A stretch of DNA of 63,516 bases, filler included, from Octopus bimaculoides (GCF_001194135.2; 6 parts of 6 records of this genome joined end to end with filler, not necessarily neighbours in it), one strand, 5' to 3'; shown: positions 484-15,965, numbered from the whole stretch's first letter. Translations and numbers: made by a program. The notes: a model not told the origin generated them from the sequence alone.

Positions 484-1137
484 NNNNNNNNNNNNNNNNN
501 NNNNNNNNNNNNNNNNNNNNNNNNNNNNNNNNNNNNNNNNNNNNNNNNNNNNNNNNNNNNNNNNNNNNNNNNNNNNNNNNNNNNNNNNNNNNNNNNNNNN
601 NNNNNNNNNNNNNNNNNNNNNNNNNNNNNNNNNNNNNNNNNNNNNNNNNNNNNNNNNNNNNNNNNNNNNNNNNNNNNNNNNNNNNNNNNNNNNNNNNNNN
701 NNNNNNNNNNNNNNNNNNNNNNNNNNNNNNNNNNNNNNNNNNNNNNNNNNNNNNNNNNNNNNNNNNNNNNNNNNNNNNNNNNNNNNNNNNNNNNNNNNNN
801 NNNNNNNNNNNNNNNNNNNNNNNNNNNNNNNNNNNNNNNNNNNNNNNNNNNNNNNNNNNNNNNNNNNNNNNNNNNNNNNNNNNNNNNNNNNNNNNNNNNN
901 NNNNNNNNNNNNNNNNNNNNNNNNNNNNNNNNNNNNNNNNNNNNNNNNNNNNNNNNNNNNNNNNNNNNNNNNNNNNNNNNNNNNNNNNNNNNNNNNNNNN
1001 NNNNNNNNNNNNNNNNNNNNNNNNNNNNNNNNNNNNNNNNNNNNNNNNNNNNNNNNNNNNNNNNNNNNNNNNNNNNNNNNNNNNNNNNNNNNNNNNNNNN
1101 NNNNNNNNNNNNNNNNNNNNNNNNNNNNNNNNNNNNN

Positions 1138-1926: not shown

Positions 1927-2038
1927 AATATACTCAAATTGATGTAAGTGAGGAACCTCTTTCGCATGAAATTGCTGATCTTGTGCCTAAACTGGAGAGA
2001 ATTGTTATTGTTATTATTAGCAGAAGTAATTCCCTTAC

Positions 2039-2287
2039 CTTTCATTGCTAAAGAAAATTCTGGAGAACAGTGGTTTTTGTCACAAAAACTCCAAGTGTAA
2101 TCTTTCTCAGATATATTTCGAATGGAAACGGTCGAGATATTATTAGTATGACTAACTTCGTAGTCATCATGCTTATAACAAGTCGTATCACATTCGAGAT
2201 TACGATGCTGATTTTTCCAAACAATAATTCTTTCCAAATTGGGTACATTAATAAGTAGGGTGGTGTTGCCTCCCAATACAGCTGGTT
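2039..2287 (-). CDS. Internal exon encoding an atypical Ig-like domain (repeat A)
   Basis: Acceptor TTTATTTCAG, donor AAAG/GTAAGG, 249 nt, phase 1-1, open: EPAVLGGNTTLLINVPNLERIIVWKNQHRNLECDTTCYKHDDYEVSHTNNISTVSIRNISEKDYTWSFCDKNHCSPEFSLAMK. Three N-x-S/T sequons. Aligns without gaps to exon 4349-4597. Confidence 0.8.
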
Positions 2288-2559
2288 CTGAAATAAATAG
2301 ATAAATCAATATCATTGATTTGTTTCCCATATGAAAGATTTCAGGGTTTTTTTTTATTATCATCATCAATTTAGTACTTACTTTTCCATTATTAGAAGCA
2401 GTTTTCTTTGTATACTATTAAACCCTCTTTCCTAATATGCGAGTCTATTGGATACAAAAGAGTCTGGATATGTTTTATGCAGAGAACTGAGAACAAATGA
2501 CAACATATAAATGTTGTCATTTTGTTTATTAAGATTGTGCAGAGTAGGATACATTATAG

Positions 2560-3310
2560 TTTCCGATAGCTAATCAAGTTGTACAGAAAGGTGTCACACC
2601 AACAACTGGTGTAGTAGCATTCTAGTTAGGTATTACAAGCATAAAGGAGATGCCTCCAAATTACTGGACCAGGTCAAGAAAGTTACAGAGAAAGTTAAAA
2701 CCCAATGAATTAGAAACAGAATTATACTAGATGAGATGCAGCTTAGTTTTATGCCAGGAAGAAAGACTACTGGTGCCATCTTCTTAGTAAGACAACTACA
2801 AGAGAAGTATTTGGTTAAAAGTAAACCATTACACTTAGCATTCGTTGACCAGGAGAAAGCCTTTGACATGACATGGTGGTCTCTGAGGAAGCTAGGAGTT
2901 GACGATTGGCTTGTAATGGCTGTATACACCATGTATATGGATTCTGTCAGTAAGGTAAGAGTTGGCCATAAGCAGAGCAATGAATTTAGGTACAGGTTCT
3001 TAGCATCCTCCTATACATCATTGTCTCCCAGACTCTAGCCGAGCAATTTAAAATTGGCTGTCCTTGGGGACTACTATATGCTAATGGTCTCATTCTCAGA
3101 GTGGAATCTAGAAAAGAATTAGAAAAGAAATTCATGAAAATATCATGTAGTATGCACTCTAGATTGGATGGTGTAAGGAAGAGCATTGACATGTAGGAGC
3201 CATGCCAAAGTAGATATTGGAGCCTGACATGGTCCTCGGGCTTGTATCCTGTCAAAACATCCAACTCATGCCAGCATGGAATGTAGATGTTAAACGACGT
3301 TGATGACAAT
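2560..3310 (+). mobile_element. Decayed RTE-clade LINE, RT fragment plus 3' tail
   Basis: QLSFMPGRKTTGAIFLVRQLQEKYL...AFVDQEKAFD...WWSLRKLGVDDWLV, with stops and frameshifts. Ends CCAGCATGG...GTTAAACGA with a GAT-like tail. Confidence 0.85.
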
Positions 3311-3419
3311 GATAAGGAATGTCGTAACCACAATCATAATTATTATGACTGTCGTAGTCCTAGTTACGTGCTGACCTAAAAATGTGAAAGATCGATGAGA
3401 AAATGCATCCCTGTACACT

Positions 3420-3575
3420 CTGTAGAATTGGTTGACATTAGGGAGGGTGTCTAGCTTTAGAAACCATGCCAAAGCAAACATTGGAGATTGACGAAGTCCT
3501 GCAGCCTGTCGGATCTTGTATGATTGTCCAACTAATGTCAGCATGGAAGGAAATAACTAAACGATGATGGTTATG
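3420..3575 (+). mobile_element. RTE 3'-UTR fragment
   Basis: Degenerate TTGACATTAGGGAGGGTGTCTAGCT...CAGCATGGAA...AAACGATGATG; similar to the 46217 and 56105 copies. Confidence 0.6.
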
Positions 3576-3844
3576 ATTGGTGCTCTTAAAATGAAATTGA
3601 GATGATCAGAGAAAAATAAATTTTAAAGATACTAAAAACTATGAGTTAAAAGAAAGAAATAGAAGGCAGAATTAAAAAGACAGCGTTTGGAAAAGGTTTG
3701 TTAAGTCATTTACCGTTTTGGGTAATTTTATAAGTTTCTTCGCGTGTCAAACCTGTATAAGATGAAAATAAAAATTTTTGATTTTCAGATTTGACACTTG
3801 ATCAACAGGATTGATTGCAATTAATCTTACAATAATTAAATAAT

Positions 3845-4193
3845 AACAAGAATACTCAGAGGGTGCAAACTTACGTCAACGCAACACCAACATCCTCTCA
3901 ATTATTAGCCAGAGATGATTTATAAAATGAGAATATCTGAAATAAACTTGGCTGCTCTCACAAACGGGAATGCAAAAAATGAACCTGACTGCTCTCAAAA
4001 ATTAAGCAAAAAAAAAAAAAACAGATAAAATAATCCAGAATCCTTGTCCGGAACCAGATCGATCCCAAAATCTAATCAANNNNNNNNNNAAAGTTTCATT
4101 CGAAACCATTCCGCAGTTCTTGAGATATCTTGTCCACGGACAAGCAAATACGACTAAAAACAATACCTCTGCCTTAGCGAAGGCAGAAGTAAT
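3845..4193 (+). mobile_element. Helentron-associated (HINE/DINE-1-like) non-autonomous element
   Basis: Starts AACAAGAATACTC and ends in hairpin CTCTGCCTT-AGCG-AAGGCAGAAG (4166-4190). Family assignment is from memory. Confidence 0.55.
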
Positions 4194-4274
4194 AATTAAC
4201 ACATGTAAATAGAATTACACATTATACGCAGTGACAATTTGAAGGCATTGAACATATGGTACTGCATCTGGGCA

Positions 4275-4276
<2 letters not shown>

Positions 4277-4332
<56 letters not shown>
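4277..4332. repeat. (ATT)n microsatellite next to the exon B donor
   Basis: Direct reading; produces the poly-N tail of ORF 4215..4802. Confidence 0.95.
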
Positions 4333-4334
<2 letters not shown>

Positions 4335-4348
4335 AATCATTTTCTTAC

Positions 4349-4597
4349 TGTTTATCTTCAGATCAAATTTTCTGTAATTGAGATTGTCGTCACAAAATGT
4401 CCAAGATAAACGTTCCTTAGTTACACTTCGGATCCATAAAGTCGATATACTCCCATTATGTGTCACTATATATTCAGGGCTGTTGGCGCATGTCAGGTCA
4501 CATTCATATTTATAATTCTGGTATCTCCAAATGACCGGTCTTTTCATGTTTGGTATTTCAGTCAACAGAATAGCACTTACGTCGAGTGTACCATTTT
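4349..4597 (-). CDS. Internal exon encoding an atypical Ig-like domain (repeat B)
   Basis: Acceptor TTTATTTCAG, donor ACA/GTAAGA, 249 nt, phase 1-1, open: ENGTLDVSAILLTEIPNMKRPVIWRYQNYKYECDLTCANSPEYIVTHNGSISTLWIRSVTKERLSWTFCDDNLNYRKFDLKIN. 29/83 residues identical to repeat A (manual count). Confidence 0.8.
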
Positions 4598-4615
4598 CTG
4601 AAATAAAGAAATCAG

Positions 4616-4905
4616 GTGAGTAGTCTGCTTCCCAAACACATGGTTCTGGGTTCAGTCCTACCTTGGGCAAGTGTGTTCTTCTATAGCCTCGGGCTGACCA
4701 AAGCCTTCTGAGATGATCTGGTAGATGGAAACTGAAAGAAGCCCGTCGTATATATATGTGAGTGTATGTGTGTTTATGCCTGTGTTTGTCTCCCATCACC
4801 ACTTGGCAATCAGTGTCGATGTGTTCATGTCCCTGTAATTTAGCGGTTCAGCAAAAGGGACCGATAAAATATGTGCCGAGATTAAAATAAATAATTCCTG
4901 GCATA
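4616..4905 (+). mobile_element. Family A SINE, 5'-truncated
   Basis: GCTTCCCAAACACATGGTTCTGGGTTCAGTCC, CCTTGGGCAAGT, GAAAGAAGCCCGTCG(TA)n and the 3' half. Confidence 0.85.
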
Positions 4906-5022: not shown

Positions 5023-5050
5023 TCTAGCAGATTCCCTCATGCAGGTTTCT

Positions 5051-5482
5051 TATTTCTTTATTGCCCACAAAGGGCTAAACATAGAGGGGACAAACAAGGA
5101 CAGACAAACGGATTAAGTCGTTTACATCGACCCCAGTGCGTAACTGGTACTTAATTTATCGACGCCGAAAGGATGAAAGGCAAAGTCGGCCTCGACGGAA
5201 TTTGAACTCAGAACGTTGTGGCAGAAGAAATACCGCTAATTTTTCGCCCAGCGCGCTAACGTTTCTTATTTCTTTATTGCCCACAAGGGGCTAAACATGG
5301 AGGGGACAAACAAGGACAGACAATGGGATTAAGCTGATTATACCGATCCCAGTGCGTAACTGGTACTTAATTTATCGACCTCGAAAGGATGAAAGGAAAA
5401 GTCGGCCTCGGCAGAATTTGAACTCAGAACGTAAAGACAGACGAAATACTGATAAGCGTTTCGCCTGGCGTTCTGCCGCCTT
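5051..5482 (-). mobile_element. Head-to-tail dimer of tRNA-derived SINE family C
   Basis: Two monomers (5051-5263, 5264-5482), each with GAGTTCAAATT and CCTTTCATCCTTTCG..GTCGATAAATTAAGTACCAG. Flanked by TSD ATGCAGGTTTCT (5039-5050, 5483-5494). Confidence 0.85.
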
Positions 5483-6668: not shown

Positions 6669-7187
6669 CTCTAGTGGATCCCCCGATTTGTGTTTCTAGC
6701 TCTTTAGCCTTACTCAATGGGAAATGTCAAAGAGAGATAACCCTGGGCAGATTCAAAGCCGTGGCTTTATCTCGAGAACAGTCATTATCAGTGACTGAGT
6801 TGCGCTAGTGAACTGCCTGGTCAGAATAAAACTTAAAAAAAACAAAAAACAAAATAGTGACTAAAGTATATGAGTTAAGGGAAATAAATAGAAGACAGAA
6901 TTAATTAGATAGTATCTAGTTTAAAAGGAGAAAAGGATTTGTTAATCCATTTACCACTTTGGATAATTTTATGACGTTGAAATCTCGACGAAGTTCCAAT
7001 TCTTGTGGACCCTGTAAAAGACGAAAGTAAAAATTTTTGATGTTCAGATTTTATATTTGATGAAAAAGATTGTTTACTATTTTTTTAATTACAATAATTA
7101 AATAATAATTAACACTTGTAGATATAATTATACAGTATATACAGTAGCAGTTCGAGTGAAGGCATTGAACATGTGGTTCTCTGCTTG

Positions 7188-7455: not shown

Positions 7456-7832
7456 GAATATACGTTAAGTATGTGTAGTTGATAATGTCTATTACACTAG
7501 CGCTGCTTTTTATTTCATATTTTAATTAATTCTCACGTATGCATTGTCGGACATACCAGCACATAGTTTTGTACACTATATGTGCATAAGTCGCGGAGTG
7601 GCGGTACAGTTCATCTCCGATTCGGTTCGGGTATGTGATGTTGATAAACCACGAAAATAGTGAAATATTGACGTTCATCACATCTGAATGGGATTCGAGG
7701 TGAGTTGTCATGCCCGTCCGTGATTTTCAGGTGTTTTAACACCCAGCGCTTTGAGACAGTAATCTCCACCACGCCAAATCGCAGCCTACATACAGGCAAA
7801 CACGTTTAGCTTGTTTGCTACGTATGTGTGTG

Positions 7833-7890
<58 letters not shown>

Positions 7891-9007
7891 NNNNNNNNNN
7901 NNNNNNNNNNNNNNNNNNNNNNNNNNNNNNNNNNNNNNNNNNNNNNNNNNNNNNNNNNNNNNNNNNNNNNNNNNNNNNNNNNNNNNNNNNNNNNNNNNNN
8001 NNNNNNNNNNNNNNNNNNNNNNNNNNNNNNNNNNNNNNNNNNNNNNNNNNNNNNNNNNNNNNNNNNNNNNNNNNNNNNNNNNNNNNNNNNNNNNNNNNNN
8101 NNNNNNNNNNNNNNNNNNNNNNNNNNNNNNNNNNNNNNNNNNNNNNNNNNNNNNNNNNNNNNNNNNNNNNNNNNNNNNNNNNNNNNNNNNNNNNNNNNNN
8201 NNNNNNNNNNNNNNNNNNNNNNNNNNNNNNNNNNNNNNNNNNNNNNNNNNNNNNNNNNNNNNNNNNNNNNNNNNNNNNNNNNNNNNNNNNNNNNNNNNNN
8301 NNNNNNNNNNNNNNNNNNNNNNNNNNNNNNNNNNNNNNNNNNNNNNNNNNNNNNNNNNNNNNNNNNNNNNNNNNNNNNNNNNNNNNNNNNNNNNNNNNNN
8401 NNNNNNNNNNNNNNNNNNNNNNNNNNNNNNNNNNNNNNNNNNNNNNNNNNNNNNNNNNNNNNNNNNNNNNNNNNNNNNNNNNNNNNNNNNNNNNNNNNNN
8501 NNNNNNNNNNNNNNNNNNNNNNNNNNNNNNNNNNNNNNNNNNNNNNNNNNNNNNNNNNNNNNNNNNNNNNNNNNNNNNNNNNNNNNNNNNNNNNNNNNNN
8601 NNNNNNNNNNNNNNNNNNNNNNNNNNNNNNNNNNNNNNNNNNNNNNNNNNNNNNNNNNNNNNNNNNNNNNNNNNNNNNNNNNNNNNNNNNNNNNNNNNNN
8701 NNNNNNNNNNNNNNNNNNNNNNAATGAACCTAAAAAATTTTTTCCAGACTTTTTTCTATTGGATATGTTCGTTTGCCTACGCATAAATTTCTCCTCAAAC
8801 GTTCGAACTCACCACCACCACCACCACCAAAAAATAACAGCTAAATAAATGCCTTGCTGGCGCATGCGTAGATTTCTCATGGGTGGAGTTATGATGTAAG
8901 TACATATTAAAACCTCTTTCAAAATTTTAATACAATTATGCAAAAAAAAAAAAAGAATCTTTTAATCCCTTCTACCCCGGCCCCTACTTCAAAAACTTAT
9001 CCACATA

Positions 9008-9343: not shown

Positions 9344-9751
9344 CCTGTGGATGTAGTGGAGGTATATGCCGGTTGCATGTAGATCTACAGGGATTATTAT
9401 GGCATGAAACGTGGCAATTCCTGAGAGAATGACAATACGTTTATAAAGCACTTAGCGGAAATTTATCCGCAATAATCTAAAAGTATGTTACTGAATTTCT
9501 CTTACACGCGATTGTTTAAAACTTTTTCAATTCTGATTTCGATGTATTTAAAAAAATATTTGGAAATTATAAAGAGAAACGAATGGCAGAATTGGGCTGT
9601 CCGTATTTTAAAAGCAAAGATTAAAAAAAATATATATAGTGGAAAGTTTTGGAAGTAGGGGAGTGGGGAATTAATTTTTTTTTTTTTTTCAGGAATGACT
9701 GTGTGGTAAGTAGTTTGCTTACCGTGCATGCATTAGTCAGTTACTTCTATA

Positions 9752-10331
9752 CCAGTATTGTTAACACGTTGCTTCGCAGCTCTTGAAGTGAAGATATTTC
9801 AAGGCGCAACTATAAGGTAAGACATTTGTTTTTTGGAGATTCAGTAGGGGTTTGTTGTTCATTTTTTTGCCCACAAGAAATCCTATCTGTCATTACAGTA
9901 TCGAAATGGTGTACATATACATCTCTCTCTCTCTCTCTTTCTGTCTCTCTCTCTCTCTCTTTCTGTCTCTCTCTCTCTCTCTTTCTGTCTCTCTCTCTCT
10001 CTCTTTCTGTCTCTCTCTCTCTCTCTTTCTGTCTCTCTCTCTCTCTCTTTCTCTCTCTGTGAAAGTATCTGTCATTACAGTATCGAAATGTGATTGTTTC
10101 AGTTAGTGGAATAGTTTCATTTTTAAAGTGAAAGTATTTGACATGAGTGTTTTTGTTTCACTTTTGACACGTAATACTTAAATAGTGCAGGAGATATTAT
10201 GTTGCTGTGTGCTCGAACTCTGCAAGAAATTAAAAAATTTTTTTGACTAAAACACAACTGGAACCCTAAGTAAGGCATGTGTAAAATTTGAATGAAATTG
10301 GTTGTGTAGTTCTCGAGTTTTAGGGATTCAC

Positions 10332-10366
<35 letters not shown>

Positions 10367-10392
10367 CACATTCTCATTTTTATATATATAGA
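9752..10392 (-). mobile_element. Non-autonomous Helitron (Lep1-like) with (CTGT)n and (GA)n
   Basis: Reverse strand A/TCTATATATATAAAA... ends CTGG/T, preceded by the hairpin GCTGC-GAA-GCAAC. Near-identical copy at 21828-22287. Confidence 0.75.
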
Positions 10393-11104: not shown

Positions 11105-12480
11105 ACACACTATTTACAGTATCAAAGGCCTTCGTTAAATCAATGAATACCTCTGGACAAGATCCATATTCTGCTCATAGCACTTTTCCTGCATCTGTCT
11201 TGCTGTGAAAATCATATCCATTGTCCCTCTACCAGATCGGAAGCTACATTGAGATTCAGATAGGACATCATTTACGAGACACCCATTCAGGCAAGTAAGA
11301 AGAATATTTGCCAGAACCTTGCCAGCAGCTGATAGTAGAGCAATACCTCTGTAGTTAACACACATTGTTCTGGCTCCTTTTCCTTTATAGAGAGGAAGAA
11401 TAATTGCATCCTTCCAGTCCTAAGGGATTGCACCATTGCTCCAGACTGCACTAATAAGTTGATGAAGGGACTGTATGATGTAATCACCACCAAATCGCAA
11501 GACCTCAGCACAAATTCCATCCTTTCTAGGCACCCTACCAAGATTCAGTTTACTTATTGATGTCATTGCTTCATCTATTGAGAGCGAGGAGTCTAAGGAG
11601 CCAATGATAGGTCTTTGTTGCATAGTATCAATCACTGTTTCATCCACAACTGACTCATGGTTTAGGAGTTCAGAGAAGTGTTCGATCCAGCGACATGTGA
11701 TTTCTGTAAATTTAATAAATAGAGTGGAAGACTCCTTGGAAAGCAAAGAAGCTCATGTGGAGTTCTTGGGCCCATAAACTTGCTTAATAAGATGGTAAAG
11801 CTTCTTGCTGTTATTTCCATCAGCAGGAACCTGAACATCAAGAGCAAGATCCTTCCCACCAAGTGTTCTGCATCTTCCGGTGGGATCGCTGCAGTAGTGA
11901 TTTTACACTGCTATAGTGGGCAAGTGCTAGATTTCGCTGCTCAGCAGAAAGTCCTCTGTTTAGCAATACATTGTGGGCATGGCGCTTTACAGCCAATAGT
12001 CGCAGAACTTCAGCACCATTTTCATTAAACCAGTCTCTGTGTTTGGCAGTAGCATATCCCAGTGTTTCAGCAGCACATTGAAGAACCTGGTCTCGAAAAT
12101 CTTCCCATGCTGCAGTATTTTCAATACTGGACAAGCGAGTCTGAAGCTCTTTCCTGAACACAGCATCATATATCTTGTAGACATTCAGATGCTAAGGAAT
12201 GCTGACTGGCCCTCTTCTTTCTTTCACTCTAATCATCATTCGGGACTATGCTCACACCAGACTGTGGTCTGTCCAGCTTTCCGATCCATGAAAGGACTTG
12301 ACATTACAAATGTCATCGATATCACGCCAAACTTTAGACCTTGGATGCATCCACGCTGTTGTGTGATTACCTTGGTGCATAAAATGAGTGTTTGCGATGA
12401 AAAGTCCATGTTTATTGCAACGCTTCAGCAGCATGAGACCATTGCTATTCATTTTTCATACTCCAAAACGTCCTAGAGGG
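11105..12480 (-). mobile_element. Decayed RTE (BovB-like) LINE: end of APE endonuclease to start of RT
   Basis: LFIANTHF...WMHPRSKVW, RWIEHFSELLN, NYRGIALLSAAGKVLA, QCSFRSGRGTMDMIF, VFIDLTKAFDTV; multiple frameshifts. Confidence 0.92.
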
Positions 12481-14151: not shown

Positions 14152-14813
14152 NNNNNNNNNNNNNNNNNNNNNNNNNNNNNNNNNNNNNNNNNNNNNNNNN
14201 NNNNNNNNNNNNNNNNNNNNNNNNNNNNNNNNNNNNNNNNNNNNNNNNNNNNNNNNNNNNNNNNNNNNNNNNNNNNNNNNNNNNNNNNNNNNNNNNNNNN
14301 NNNNNNNNNNNNNNNNNNNNNNNNNNNNNNNNNNNNNNNNNNNNNNNNNNNNNNNNNNNNNNNNNNNNNNNNNNNNNNNNNNNNNNNNNNNNNNNNNNNN
14401 NNNNNNNNNNNNNNNNNNNNNNNNNNNNNNNNNNNNNNNNNNNNNNNNNNNNNNNNNNNNNNNNNNNNNNNNNNNNNNNNNNNNNNNNNNNNNNNNNNNN
14501 NNNNNNNNNNNNNNNNNNNNNNNNNNNNNNNNNNNNNNNNNNNNNNNNNNNNNNNNNNNNNNNNNNNNNNNNNNNNNNNNNNNNNNNNNNNNNNNNNNNN
14601 NNNNNNNNNNNNNNNNNNNNNNNNNNNNNNNNNNNNNNNNNNNNNNNNNNNNNNNNNNNNNNNNNNNNNNNNNNNNNNNNNNNNNNNNNNNNNNNNNNNN
14701 NNNNNNNNNNNNNNNNNNNNNNACACACACACACACACACACACACATACATTCCGGTGCCCCAGCATAGCCACAGCCTCAGCACTGAAACATAAAAGAA
14801 TTAAAGAATACAC

Positions 14814-14957
14814 ACGACGGACTTCTTTCAGTTTCCGTCTACCAAATCCACTCACAAGGCTTCGACCAGCCCGAGCTATTGTAGAAGACATTTGCCCAAG
14901 GTGCCACGCTGTGAGACCGAACCTGGGACCATGTGGTTGGGAAGCAAAGTTCTTGCC
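14814..14957 (-). mobile_element. Family A SINE, 5' half
   Basis: Same motifs as 30-181. Confidence 0.85.
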
Positions 14958-14994
14958 AGAGAGAGAGATACATAATACATACATACATATACAT

Positions 14995-15965
14995 CATGAT
15001 GATGATGATGATGATGATGACAGCGGTTCTTCGTGTCCGAAGATCATGAGAATGAGCACCGAGCTATGTAAACTGATCTTTGAATGACAATCTCTGATAC
15101 ATTTAGGACAAATATTGAGGCTTTCGTTCGATGTGGGTTGTGACGATGACTATCGTTCTTTGGCTTTTCTGTCACCGTAATTGTTCTGGTTTTCTCAAAA
15201 TTGCTTGTAACGGTCTGGATGTAATCTCTCTACACTTTACTCTATGCTGCGAGTTCCTCCCAACGTATGGAAGTCGTTCCCATATGGGTGGGTTGCTGCT
15301 TTCAGCTGGTCTTTGAAACGCTTCCGAGAGTGGCTCTTCTGTTGTTTTCGCTCTGGCTGAACTCGTGGAATATGGCCTTCGGCATTTTGGATTTGATCAC
15401 GTGTAAGGTGTAGTCTGCCCATCTGAATTATCTGAGCAGCAACATGGTTTCAATGCTACGGACGTTGATCTGCTGAAGGACTTCGTTGTTGGTAATAAAT
15501 TCCTTCCATGAGATGTTCATGATGAAACAAAAACACCATTGGTGGAAGCACCCTAGCAGCTTGACTTGCATCCTGTACAGCATCCAAGCTTCTGACCCAT
15601 AGACTGCCTTGTAGACTTTGATTCTGGTGGATATGTGCAGTGTGCGGGAGTTGTTGGCTTTAACAATGTGATTGTCAACATCCTTTTCAAGGTTGTGACA
15701 CTGGAAATGACACTCATAAACTAAGTGAAGTATTCGATCCATTCTCAGTTGAGAATGGCGTGAAACGGTGCAGAGGAAAGCCAAAAGGGACGTGCGCGAG
15801 AGAAACCTACATCCGTTTCTACACTGACAGGTGCATATTCAACCTTCACTGACTCCTTGCTCGCAGAAAGGTTCGTGTCTAGCTTTGCTAAAGCAGCCAA
15901 AGCCTTAGGCCTCTCCATCAGTCTGAGGAAAACAGAAGTGCTGTTCCAGAAACCAACATATGCTA
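14995..15965 (-). mobile_element. 5'-truncated RTE LINE with intact 3' end and inverted 5' segment
   Basis: 15842 down to ~15020 (-): YFT, LEKDVDNHIVKAN, VYGSEAW, GRLHL, C-terminal Cys remnant, then CTTCGGACACGAAG and a (TCA)n tail. 15844-15965 encodes SFAKAAKALGLSISLRKTEVLFQKP on the + strand. Confidence 0.85.

Follow-up and report, generated by a model that had tools for sequence, protein, structure and literature searches.

Tandem exons of an Octopus bimaculoides locus probably belong to a clustered, octopod-restricted family of divergent Ig-like membrane glycoproteins

Introduction

To what kind of protein do two similar 249-nucleotide (nt) exons on the minus strand of an octopus scaffold belong, and are they part of a complete gene? 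The exons lie between positions 2039 and 4597 of a 63,516-nt stretch of Octopus bimaculoides DNA (the window, filler included), joined from six parts of six records of assembly GCF_001194135.2; the window is the reverse complement of CM046629.1 in GCA_001194135.2, with identical gaps in both. A first-pass annotation, made from the sequence without database searches, had read them as repeats of a non-canonical immunoglobulin (Ig)-like domain and had proposed an uncharacterised cephalopod family of surface receptors. The evidence assembled here makes it very probable that they are real exons of one member, LOC128251236, of a clustered, octopod-restricted family of divergent Ig-like type I membrane glycoproteins. 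Four loci are compared throughout: L001 is the window's LOC128251236, L002 is LOC106871836, L003 is LOC106867739, and L004 is LOC115225372 of O. sinensis (CM016885.1); proteins carry P numbers.

Four exons of one gene

Both 249-nt exons were found where the first-pass annotation had placed them, with the phases, acceptors, GTAAG donors and AAT tract that it had described. Two micro-exons accompany them:

7011..6955, minus strand: micro-exon mini0, 57 nt, phase 1-1, encoding (G)STRIGTSSRFQRHKIIQS; linker, or predicted strand A, before domain A
4597..4349, minus strand: exon A, 249 nt, phase 1-1, A-type Ig-like domain (strands A' to G) of 83 amino acids (aa), with Cys33, Cys37 and Cys69
3752..3714, minus strand: micro-exon mini1, 39 nt, phase 1-1, encoding SLTREETYKITQN; linker, or predicted strand A, of domain B
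2287..2039, minus strand: exon B, 249 nt, phase 1-1, B-type (membrane-proximal subtype) Ig-like domain, with Cys33, Cys37, Cys69 and Cys74

Exons A and B share one form of acceptor, TTTATTTCAG (TCTTTATTTCAG at A and TATTTATTTCAG at B), and GTAAG donors (GTAAGAAA and GTAAGGGA, respectively); each is laid out as 2 nt, 82 codons and 1 nt, and an AAT-like tract lies downstream of exon B as well. Without gaps, their peptides agree at 28/82 whole codons, or 29/83 once the split first codon is included, and carry five N-x-S/T sequons (NGT and NGS in A; NTT, NIS and NIS in B), the same values that had first been counted by hand. The BLOSUM62 local score of A against B is 161, versus 26 ± 5.3 (maximum 58) in 1000 shuffles, i.e. 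~25 standard deviations (SD) above; tblastn aligns the two at E = 1.4e-17 and finds no further domain copies in the window.

How are these pieces joined? Micro-exon mini0 sits directly between TTTTACAG and GTAAATGG, and mini1 between TTATACAG and GTAAATGA (CAG/.../GTAAAT). The former is homologous to linker micro-exons of L002 and L003 and is used in P0002, the NCBI model of this very locus (LOC128251236), in which residues 22-104 are 100% identical to exon A, preceded by GSTRIGTSSRFQRHKIIQS and followed by SLTREETYKITQN. P0002 thus includes mini1 too, and the paralogous exon is included in P0001, the model of L002, which splices A', a 39-nt exon and B'. The window's message probably runs mini0, A, mini1, B, with A and B not spliced directly together; the expected junctions are 6955/4597, 4349/3752 and 3714/2287, and the product of the four spliced exons is STRIGTSSRFQRHKIIQS-(domain A)-SLTREETYKITQN-(domain B). 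The junction from 4349 to 2287 assumed in the first-pass annotation skips the 39-nt micro-exon at 3752..3714 and is probably mistaken, and A and B, which it took for simple tandem duplicates, turn out to represent two conserved subtypes. None of the eight splice sites of these four exons is disrupted, and no stop interrupts either 83-codon frame. A gap of Ns at 4080-4089 is intronic, between exon A and mini1, and touches no exon: no reading frame crosses it because each exon is self-contained in phase, and the join across it is credible because the order A, mini1, B is colinear with L002 and L003.

A divergent Ig-like domain

Which fold would these 83 residues adopt? AlphaFold2, run with a 43-row alignment, models domain A as seven strands with a short E-F helical turn (predicted local distance difference test, pLDDT, 92; predicted template-modelling score, pTM, 0.82). 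In Foldseek comparisons with the PDB, each of the 50 matches listed, in both searches, is an Ig domain or a chain that contains one, at probability 1.00; the best match listed is cC0 of MyBP-C (template-modelling, TM, score 0.72; 2.2 Å), and titin M1, twitchin Ig26, an obscurin I-set domain and the antibody light-chain variable domain (VL) are also listed. A family profile run against the PDB reaches titin at E = 1.4e-3 and obscurin, CD2 and myotilin at 0.03-0.8, with alphavirus E1 glycoprotein chains interspersed, and Pfam I-set scores 23.6 bits with P0003 (cutoff 23.7), 21.7 with P0004 and 56.8, above the cutoff, with the abalone protein P0028. A match of the window peptides to Pfam ACCA_BT (E = 0.15) was set aside as due to chance. 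The strand-C Trp (W24) is present in 40 of 41 octopod domains and in the abalone repeats, and the family carries the Ig-like E-strand/E-F motif STLWIxxVT..(D/E/C)..W.F. On the predicted model, the domain is an Ig β-sandwich, nearest to I-set and V-like domains; the structure check thus bears out the Ig-like fold of the first-pass annotation.

How does such a domain manage without the canonical B-F disulfide? Among the 41 octopod family domains in which cysteines were counted, none has a Cys at the B-strand (positions 11-13), and the F-strand Cys69 is present in 8/41; the canonical bond is missing. Cys33, by contrast, is found in 41/41 and Cys37 in 39/41, which upholds ECDxTC as a hallmark. Cys26 and Cys63 each occur in 21/41 domains, and together in 19/41; Cys74 occurs in 9/41, and together with Cys69 in 6/41. 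Because the cysteines covary, the pattern suggests that a Cys33-Cys37 bond would staple a C'-region hairpin and that a second local bond would form either between Cys26 and Cys63 (in most A-type domains) or between Cys69 and Cys74 (in B-type domains); Cys69 of the window's domain A would be unpaired. The B-F disulfide is common in Ig domains and not obligatory: its loss marks the family domain as non-canonical and does not exclude Ig membership. The first-pass annotation had been right to note the missing B-F bond; its second feature, an F strand reading 'WxF-C', is a minority state (8/41) that characterises B-type domains and the A/d2 sub-lineage, and most domains use Cys26/Cys63.

If exon A supplies strands A' to G, where is strand A? 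A model of mini0 plus exon A has eight strands, the additional N-terminal one being RHKIIQ (pLDDT ~55-70), and its matches span whole VL domains. On this model, we infer that the micro-exon encodes strand A, so that the Ig domain would be split over a 39-nt and a 249-nt exon. In L004 and P0006, two successive linker micro-exons lie between domains and an orphan linker precedes the transmembrane exon; linkers thus occur without a following domain exon, and therefore not every linker can be strand A.

The I-set (Pfam PF07679; titin, MyBP-C, twitchin, obscurin) supplies the best structural matches listed (TM score 0.69-0.72; root-mean-square deviation, rmsd, 2.2-3.0 Å) and the sole sequence-level signals of the family in Pfam and the PDB; the strand-C Trp, the D/E-strand motif 'YKVT..g..StLwI..Vt' and a length of ~96 aa, strand A included, are shared. 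Many muscle I-set domains also have no B-F disulfide. Unlike the I-set, the octopod family has no such bond in any counted domain, a near-invariant Cys33-x3-Cys37 and alternative covarying Cys pairs, and its domains are predicted to be extracellular, N-glycosylated and part of type I membrane proteins; the octopus sequences score at or below the Pfam threshold. With VL of the V-set, the micro-exon plus exon model aligns over its full length (107 of 107-109 columns), and the family linker Y-K-I-T-Q-S-G...V-L-G, read by eye, resembles the VL A/A' strands 'IQMTQSPSSLSASVG'. Unlike in I-set comparisons, the TM score is lower and the rmsd is 5-6 Å; unlike VL, the family domain has 7-8 predicted strands with no distinct C'' strand evident and neither the canonical Cys pair nor a J-like G-strand motif.

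Protein architecture and exon grammar

What does a complete member look like? Full-length proteins begin with a hydrophobic leader and continue with one to four units, each made of a 13-aa linker 'xxxxxxYKI(T/I)Q(S/N)' and the 83-aa domain; a stalk, a transmembrane segment and a short basic tail follow. A hydropathy scan finds an N-terminal 10-aa window with a mean of 2.1-3.6 in 12 of 13 database relatives; at the C-terminus of the relatives, a hydrophobic segment of 19-25 aa (2.2-3.8 in 19-aa windows) is followed by basic residues. As read from these sequences, relatives with a signal peptide, one to four domains, a transmembrane helix and a short tail fit the surface-receptor family that had been proposed at first pass. 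Two domain subtypes recur, a membrane-distal A-type and a membrane-proximal B-type (FCDxxxC); the B-type is the last domain in four proteins, standing directly before the stalk and transmembrane segment in P0004, P0009 and P0019 and before a read-through end in P0001.

The exon structure follows the same units. The four exons in the window are all phase 1-1, and the domain and linker exons of L002, L003 and L004 follow suit; transmembrane exons were located in the latter three loci. L003, a complete neighbour gene ~56 kb away on the opposite strand, reads signal peptide, mini, d1, mini, d2, mini, d3 (B-type), transmembrane exon, and L004 uses the same grammar. As each unit begins and ends in phase 1, the frame would survive when a unit is duplicated, swapped or left out. 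Isoforms of O. sinensis LOC115225115 are set apart by exactly one unit, either a 13-aa linker or a domain, and on this ground cassette splicing is proposed. L005, a 1,067-nt contig from SRR3401912, an octopus meta-transcriptome (PMC11662614), holds one uninterrupted ORF (open reading frame) over leader, linker, domain and transmembrane segment; at least one member is therefore transcribed, with splicing as deduced from the genes.

The protein would accordingly be pictured as a single-pass type I glycoprotein whose ectodomain is a string of divergent Ig-like domains, each unit coming from a 249-nt phase 1-1 exon behind a 39-nt (in the window also 57-nt) phase 1-1 micro-exon, with complete relatives built as signal peptide, one to four A-type units, an optional B-type unit, stalk, transmembrane segment and short tail.

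Some members depart from this plan. In L002, four tandem copies of a terminal exon (14559-15319; period ~215 nt) are found 1.5-2.3 kb beyond B', on its downstream side; all four encode a transmembrane helix, a 'PY(I/V)WI(K/R)TR' juxtamembrane motif and a stop, the first copy abuts an N gap, and P0001 ignores them all. A subgroup (P0014, P0016, P0022, P0025, P0029, P0030 and P0036) has one Ig-like domain followed by one or two Cys-rich modules of ~85 aa and a transmembrane segment; the module, 'KPKIE..C.Y.V.A.CSLP.T.I.C...CSDG.T...', has no Pfam match beyond a faint one to C2-set_3 at E = 0.21. In P0005, P0015, P0012, P0003 and P0007, an acidic residue lies within or at the start of the predicted transmembrane helix (e.g. 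VLCLENIILIIL, SILEFVAILF), which is reminiscent, by analogy, of the charge-mediated pairing of vertebrate immune receptors with partner chains.

Members, range and clustering

How widespread is the family? A profile built from four domains was searched exhaustively against 1.84 billion representatives and matched 35 cluster representatives at E ≤ 1e-3, 27 of them at ≤ 1e-10. A word-indexed protein search, made with the concatenated peptides and again with a 43-sequence alignment, returned two proteins each time, P0001 and P0002, both unnamed O. bimaculoides models. Of 34 new representatives, 30 were looked up; the other four (P0031 and P0033-P0035; E 2e-6 to 7e-4) are bacterial repeat proteins, set aside as spurious since the matches cover only short stretches of unrelated repeats. 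The members looked up come from O. bimaculoides, O. sinensis, O. vulgaris and Argonauta hians, plus one distant protein from the abalone Haliotis rufescens, and no squid, cuttlefish or nautilus sequence is among the 30. The family's strong representatives, at least 27 in number, derive from these four octopod species and from some sequencing runs without a species label. The cephalopod family of the first-pass annotation is upheld for octopods (Octopus, Argonauta), with a remote abalone relative, and not for cephalopods at large.

All members that carry a name are called 'uncharacterized' or 'hypothetical' except P0024, an O. sinensis 'zinc finger protein 239-like' model in which C2H2 zinc fingers are fused to one family domain; this chimera is most likely a prediction artefact from adjacent genes. 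Six LOC identifiers of the family appear in no paper found, and a keyword search likewise yields nothing on it. The family looks unnamed, octopod-restricted and new to the literature, and 'uncharacterised' was an apt word for it: the names, the window peptides' want of a Pfam match and the literature search all agree. Its genes are clustered. In O. bimaculoides, at least four family loci lie on a contig as long as the window's scaffold (11,991,813 bp), and the two that were fetched are both on CM046629.1; O. sinensis has many family loci on one 21.3-Mb scaffold, and O. vulgaris several on one 34.6-Mb contig.

Outside the cephalopods, no relative was found other than the abalone protein (P0028; LOC124119024), which matches the profile at E = 2.9e-11. 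Its architecture is that of the family, with five tandem repeats, an S/T stalk and a transmembrane helix, and it shares C-x3-C (CNPSC), the strand-C Trp and STLTIHSV...W.I.D.N; unlike the family, it has an additional Cys at either end of every repeat and neither Cys26/63 nor Cys69/74, and it is 22-24% identical to domain A.

Divergence among paralogs

Is the ectodomain conserved? At the aa level, exon A matches domain 2 of LOC106867739 at 75% identity; for exon B, the identity is 63% with B' of L002 and 42% (35/83) with domain 3 of LOC106867739. Exon A, mini1 and the intron are 85-87% identical to d2, mini and intron of LOC106867739, and B is 72% identical to d3 of that gene and 77% to B' of L002; the A side being nearer to LOC106867739 and B nearer to L002, the window locus is therefore a mosaic. 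Nei-Gojobori estimates of dN/dS, with a Fisher test for dN < dS, are 0.35 for A versus A' (p = 7e-4), 0.20 for B versus B' (p = 8e-8), 0.44 for A versus d2 (p = 0.027) and 0.47 for B versus d3. Purifying selection, suggested at first pass from the open frames, is thus supported in that dN < dS (dN/dS 0.2-0.5), yet the constraint is moderate, and the exons change at least as fast as the neighbouring intron. The ectodomain evolves fast, with moderate constraint at best; diversifying selection is possible.

One flank stands out:

1927..2038, minus strand: conserved 3' flank of exon B, GTAAGG.AATTACTTCTGCTAATAATAACAATAA...; equivalents at L003 14981-15092 and L002 13028-13131

This flank is 89% identical to that of d3 in L003 and 80% to that of B' in L002, versus 61% and 73% for the exons there; B-type exons as a group are 61-73% identical versus 79-89% for the 112-130 nt that follow. 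It is not a dispersed repeat, occurring in the four loci only beside domain exons. The conserved flank could serve as an alternative terminal exon or act in splicing; alternatively, it could point to diversifying selection on the exon. A general rule that exons are less conserved than their flanks was rejected, since it holds consistently only for the 3' flank of B-type exons. With fixed flanks of 200/130 nt, the upstream sides are 43-72% identical and run into non-homologous insertions resembling short interspersed nuclear elements (SINEs); because of these insertions, upstream flanks are uninformative.

Introns, repeats and a possible host gene

What surrounds the exons? Three features lie in or beside the first introns:

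4615..4755: SINE-like high-copy repeat, which stops 17 nt before the exon A acceptor, on its upstream side
4275..4333: (AAT/ATT)19.7 microsatellite, starting ~16 nt past the exon A donor; like tracts follow A' in L002 and d1/d2 in L003
~3845..4190: intronic stretch of 346 nt without counterpart in L002 or L003, holding the N gap; the flanking homology blocks abut directly in both paralogs

Searches for a clear terminal inverted repeat or target-site duplication around the 3845-4190 insertion gave nothing convincing. The SINE-like repeat has ~25 full or partial matches, in both orientations, across L001-L004, and its tRNA-like core occurs once more in the window; other tRNA-related SINE-like copies lie at 5045-5449 (a 216-nt unit doubled in tandem), 1138-1446 and 126-147. 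It is a matter of speculation that same-family repeats around exon units could favour unequal crossing-over. Fragments of retrotransposon ORFs are found at 11135-12476 (minus strand) and 2736-3038 (plus strand): 11135-11365 matches RVT_1 below threshold (23.6 bits; cutoff 29.6), and the ORF at 2736-3038, in the intron from mini1 to exon B, has a 'FVDQEKAFD' motif typical of the reverse transcriptase (RT) of long interspersed nuclear elements, yet no Pfam match. Microsatellites at 7825-7890 ((TG)33, abutting the assembly gap at 7891), 9922-10058 ((TCTC)n, 22-nt period) and 10332-10370 ((ACAG)n) give rise to long, spurious ORFs when all six frames are listed.

A gene model of 250 residues, encoded on the strand that also carries the window exons, extends over at least 69 kb (all of L001; L003 19458-26604; CM046629.1 ~1.076 to >1.144 Mb), and LOC128251236 appears to be nested in its intron or introns. 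The last coding segment of this model (...QIFPSFFSGTKVSLEALVVSVQLK*) has no similarity to the Ig-like family.

Is the window's gene complete?

If the relatives are complete membrane proteins, is LOC128251236 one too? Three features bear on the answer:

9729..9723, minus strand: annotated start of LOC128251236, ATGCACG/GTAAGC, with 7 coding nt ('MH' plus 1 nt) and no signal peptide
7891..8722: assembly gap at the expected place of an upstream A-type domain exon; colinearity with L003 puts the end of a d1-type exon at ~7904, at the gap edge
484..1137: assembly gap beginning 902 nt downstream of exon B, a possible site of the transmembrane/tail exon

Several findings weigh against the account favoured here. 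P0002 has 119 aa and neither leader nor anchor; its first exon contributes 7 coding nt, and its end lies in the intron past mini1, reached by read-through; exon B is absent from every protein model found. No signal-peptide or transmembrane exon was found in assembled L001 by tblastn with the leaders and transmembrane segments/tails of ten relatives and the four L002 transmembrane exons. In a drift simulation, the open frame survived with P = 0.09-0.27 for A and 0.04-0.15 for B; because survival under neutral drift is not improbable, intact ORFs alone are weak evidence of function, and after this simulation open frames were discarded as proof of it. Exon A is 84.3% identical to d2, and the neighbouring 1.1 kb of intron 84.7%. 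The window peptides have no Pfam Ig match; the pLDDT of the strand-A segment is only ~55-70, and its role, like the disulfide pairings, rests on a predicted model. Function, finally, is inferred from architecture.

Is the window copy then a dead or partial duplicate, consisting of mini0, A, mini1 and B only, which arose by segmental duplication in the cluster and, without leader or anchor, would give at most a non-functional RNA? This has an appreciable chance of being right, though short of even. It would account for the truncated and oddly initiated NCBI model, the undetectable end exons and the mosaic make-up of the locus, and it sits well with introns filled with repeat and RT-like sequence, with an exon A identity that equals that of the intron and with the results of the drift simulation. 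It fits less well with eight intact splice sites and two intact frames (joint neutral probability of both being open ~0.003-0.04) and with dN < dS in every comparison, and the places where colinearity would put the missing exons are precisely the assembly gaps at 7891-8722 and 484-1137. The transmembrane exon follows the B-type exon by 0.6 kb in L003 and 1.5-2.3 kb in L002. We regard it as fairly likely that the window gene is complete, its missing exons being hidden by assembly gaps. A further account dispenses with the anchor: the window locus and other members might yield soluble or truncated products by donor read-through after a micro-exon or a B-type exon, the conserved flank serving as an alternative terminal exon. 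P0001, P0017 and P0027 all end in the flank at ...SANNNNNNSF*, P0002 ends just after mini1, and the flank is better conserved than the exon before it and no dispersed repeat in the four loci; even so, this is unlikely, as read-through past exon B in the window runs for ~50 codons and misses the conserved stop position, such ends may be gene-prediction artefacts (P0001 ignores the transmembrane exons downstream in L002), and the Logan contig of P0027 is unspliced on its 5' side and may be genomic or pre-mRNA.

Two other readings question the domain itself. A different β-sandwich (fibronectin III or cadherin-like) mis-assigned by AlphaFold and Foldseek is highly improbable: the modest Foldseek E values (best 4e-3 and 3.5e-4), the 10-24% identity to the matches and the silence of Pfam on the window peptides would allow it, but the listed matches in both searches are Ig throughout, independent sequence signals point to I-set, titin, obscurin and CD2, and Ig hallmarks are present in the strand-C Trp, the E-strand/E-F motif and the phase-1 exons. 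Least credible of all is a transposon-derived or chance origin of the open frames within repeats. SINE-like sequence does end 17 nt before the exon A acceptor, AAT and SINE-like sequence follows the donors, and RT-like ORFs occur in the intron and elsewhere in the window; yet the SINE-like sequences flank the exons and do not include them, neither the peptides nor the full-length relatives match an RT, transposase, integrase or gag family in Pfam (a transposon-protein match, named at first pass as grounds for dropping the idea, was thus absent), the homologs are cellular and have the leader and anchor of a type I membrane protein, a spliced mRNA is on record, and the similarity of A and B lies 25 SD above chance. 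The exons of LOC128251236 as part of the octopod Ig-like family remain the best explanation.

Comparison with known systems and implications

Surface and regulatory gene families, protocadherins and C2H2 zinc fingers among them, have undergone known lineage-specific expansions in octopuses, and expansions of this kind in the Ig superfamily (IgSF) are common in invertebrates; to our knowledge, octopus immune and cell-recognition receptors are poorly known by comparison. What might the present family do? Judging from its architecture, the protein would act as an extracellular recognition or adhesion module. The tails are short and hold no known signalling domain, and no motif like the immunoreceptor tyrosine-based inhibitory or activation motifs (ITIM/ITAM) was recognised in them by eye; any signalling would need a partner.

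Vertebrates offer a parallel. CEACAM/PSG and CD2/SLAM proteins are type I, heavily glycosylated and encoded by phase-1 Ig exons, with a membrane-distal domain without the canonical disulfide; their genes are clustered and rapidly evolving, with domain-cassette splicing and short tails. The likeness to the octopod family is one of analogy, CD2 being a weak profile match (E = 0.65): unlike these groups, the family has no detectable orthology to them, another Cys pattern and, on the predicted model, strand A on a separate micro-exon. Among molluscs, the fibrinogen-related proteins (FREPs) of Biomphalaria are an IgSF expansion, diversified and considered candidates for non-self recognition; they are secreted and carry a C-terminal fibrinogen domain. 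Unlike FREPs, the octopod proteins are membrane-anchored and have no lectin-type domain, and no sequence relationship was detected.

What looks new is an octopod subfamily of the IgSF, so far undescribed, in which the disulfides would be re-wired and the domain split between exons. To annotators it offers a profile for a new domain model and a rule for 39-nt micro-exons that predictors miss or mis-terminate; for work on expression and binding in haemocytes, skin, suckers or nervous tissue it offers candidate genes. It also illustrates how an Ig domain may lose the B-F disulfide and substitute local, covarying Cys pairs. In the proposed mechanism, diversity would arise at the level of genes and of isoforms, through gene duplication, exchange of phase-1 units and cassette splicing. 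A bolder idea, tentative and somewhat doubtful, is that the cluster forms an octopod-specific repertoire of recognition receptors (immune-type, self/non-self or cell-cell) that diversifies by these routes, with domain exons under diversifying selection, to which the lower identity of B-type exons (61-73%) than of their 3' flanks (79-89%) would point, and with re-invented disulfides in place of the canonical core bond. If this were true, the repertoire would be an invertebrate analogue of the fast-evolving IgSF clusters of vertebrates (CEACAM, KIR, SLAM).

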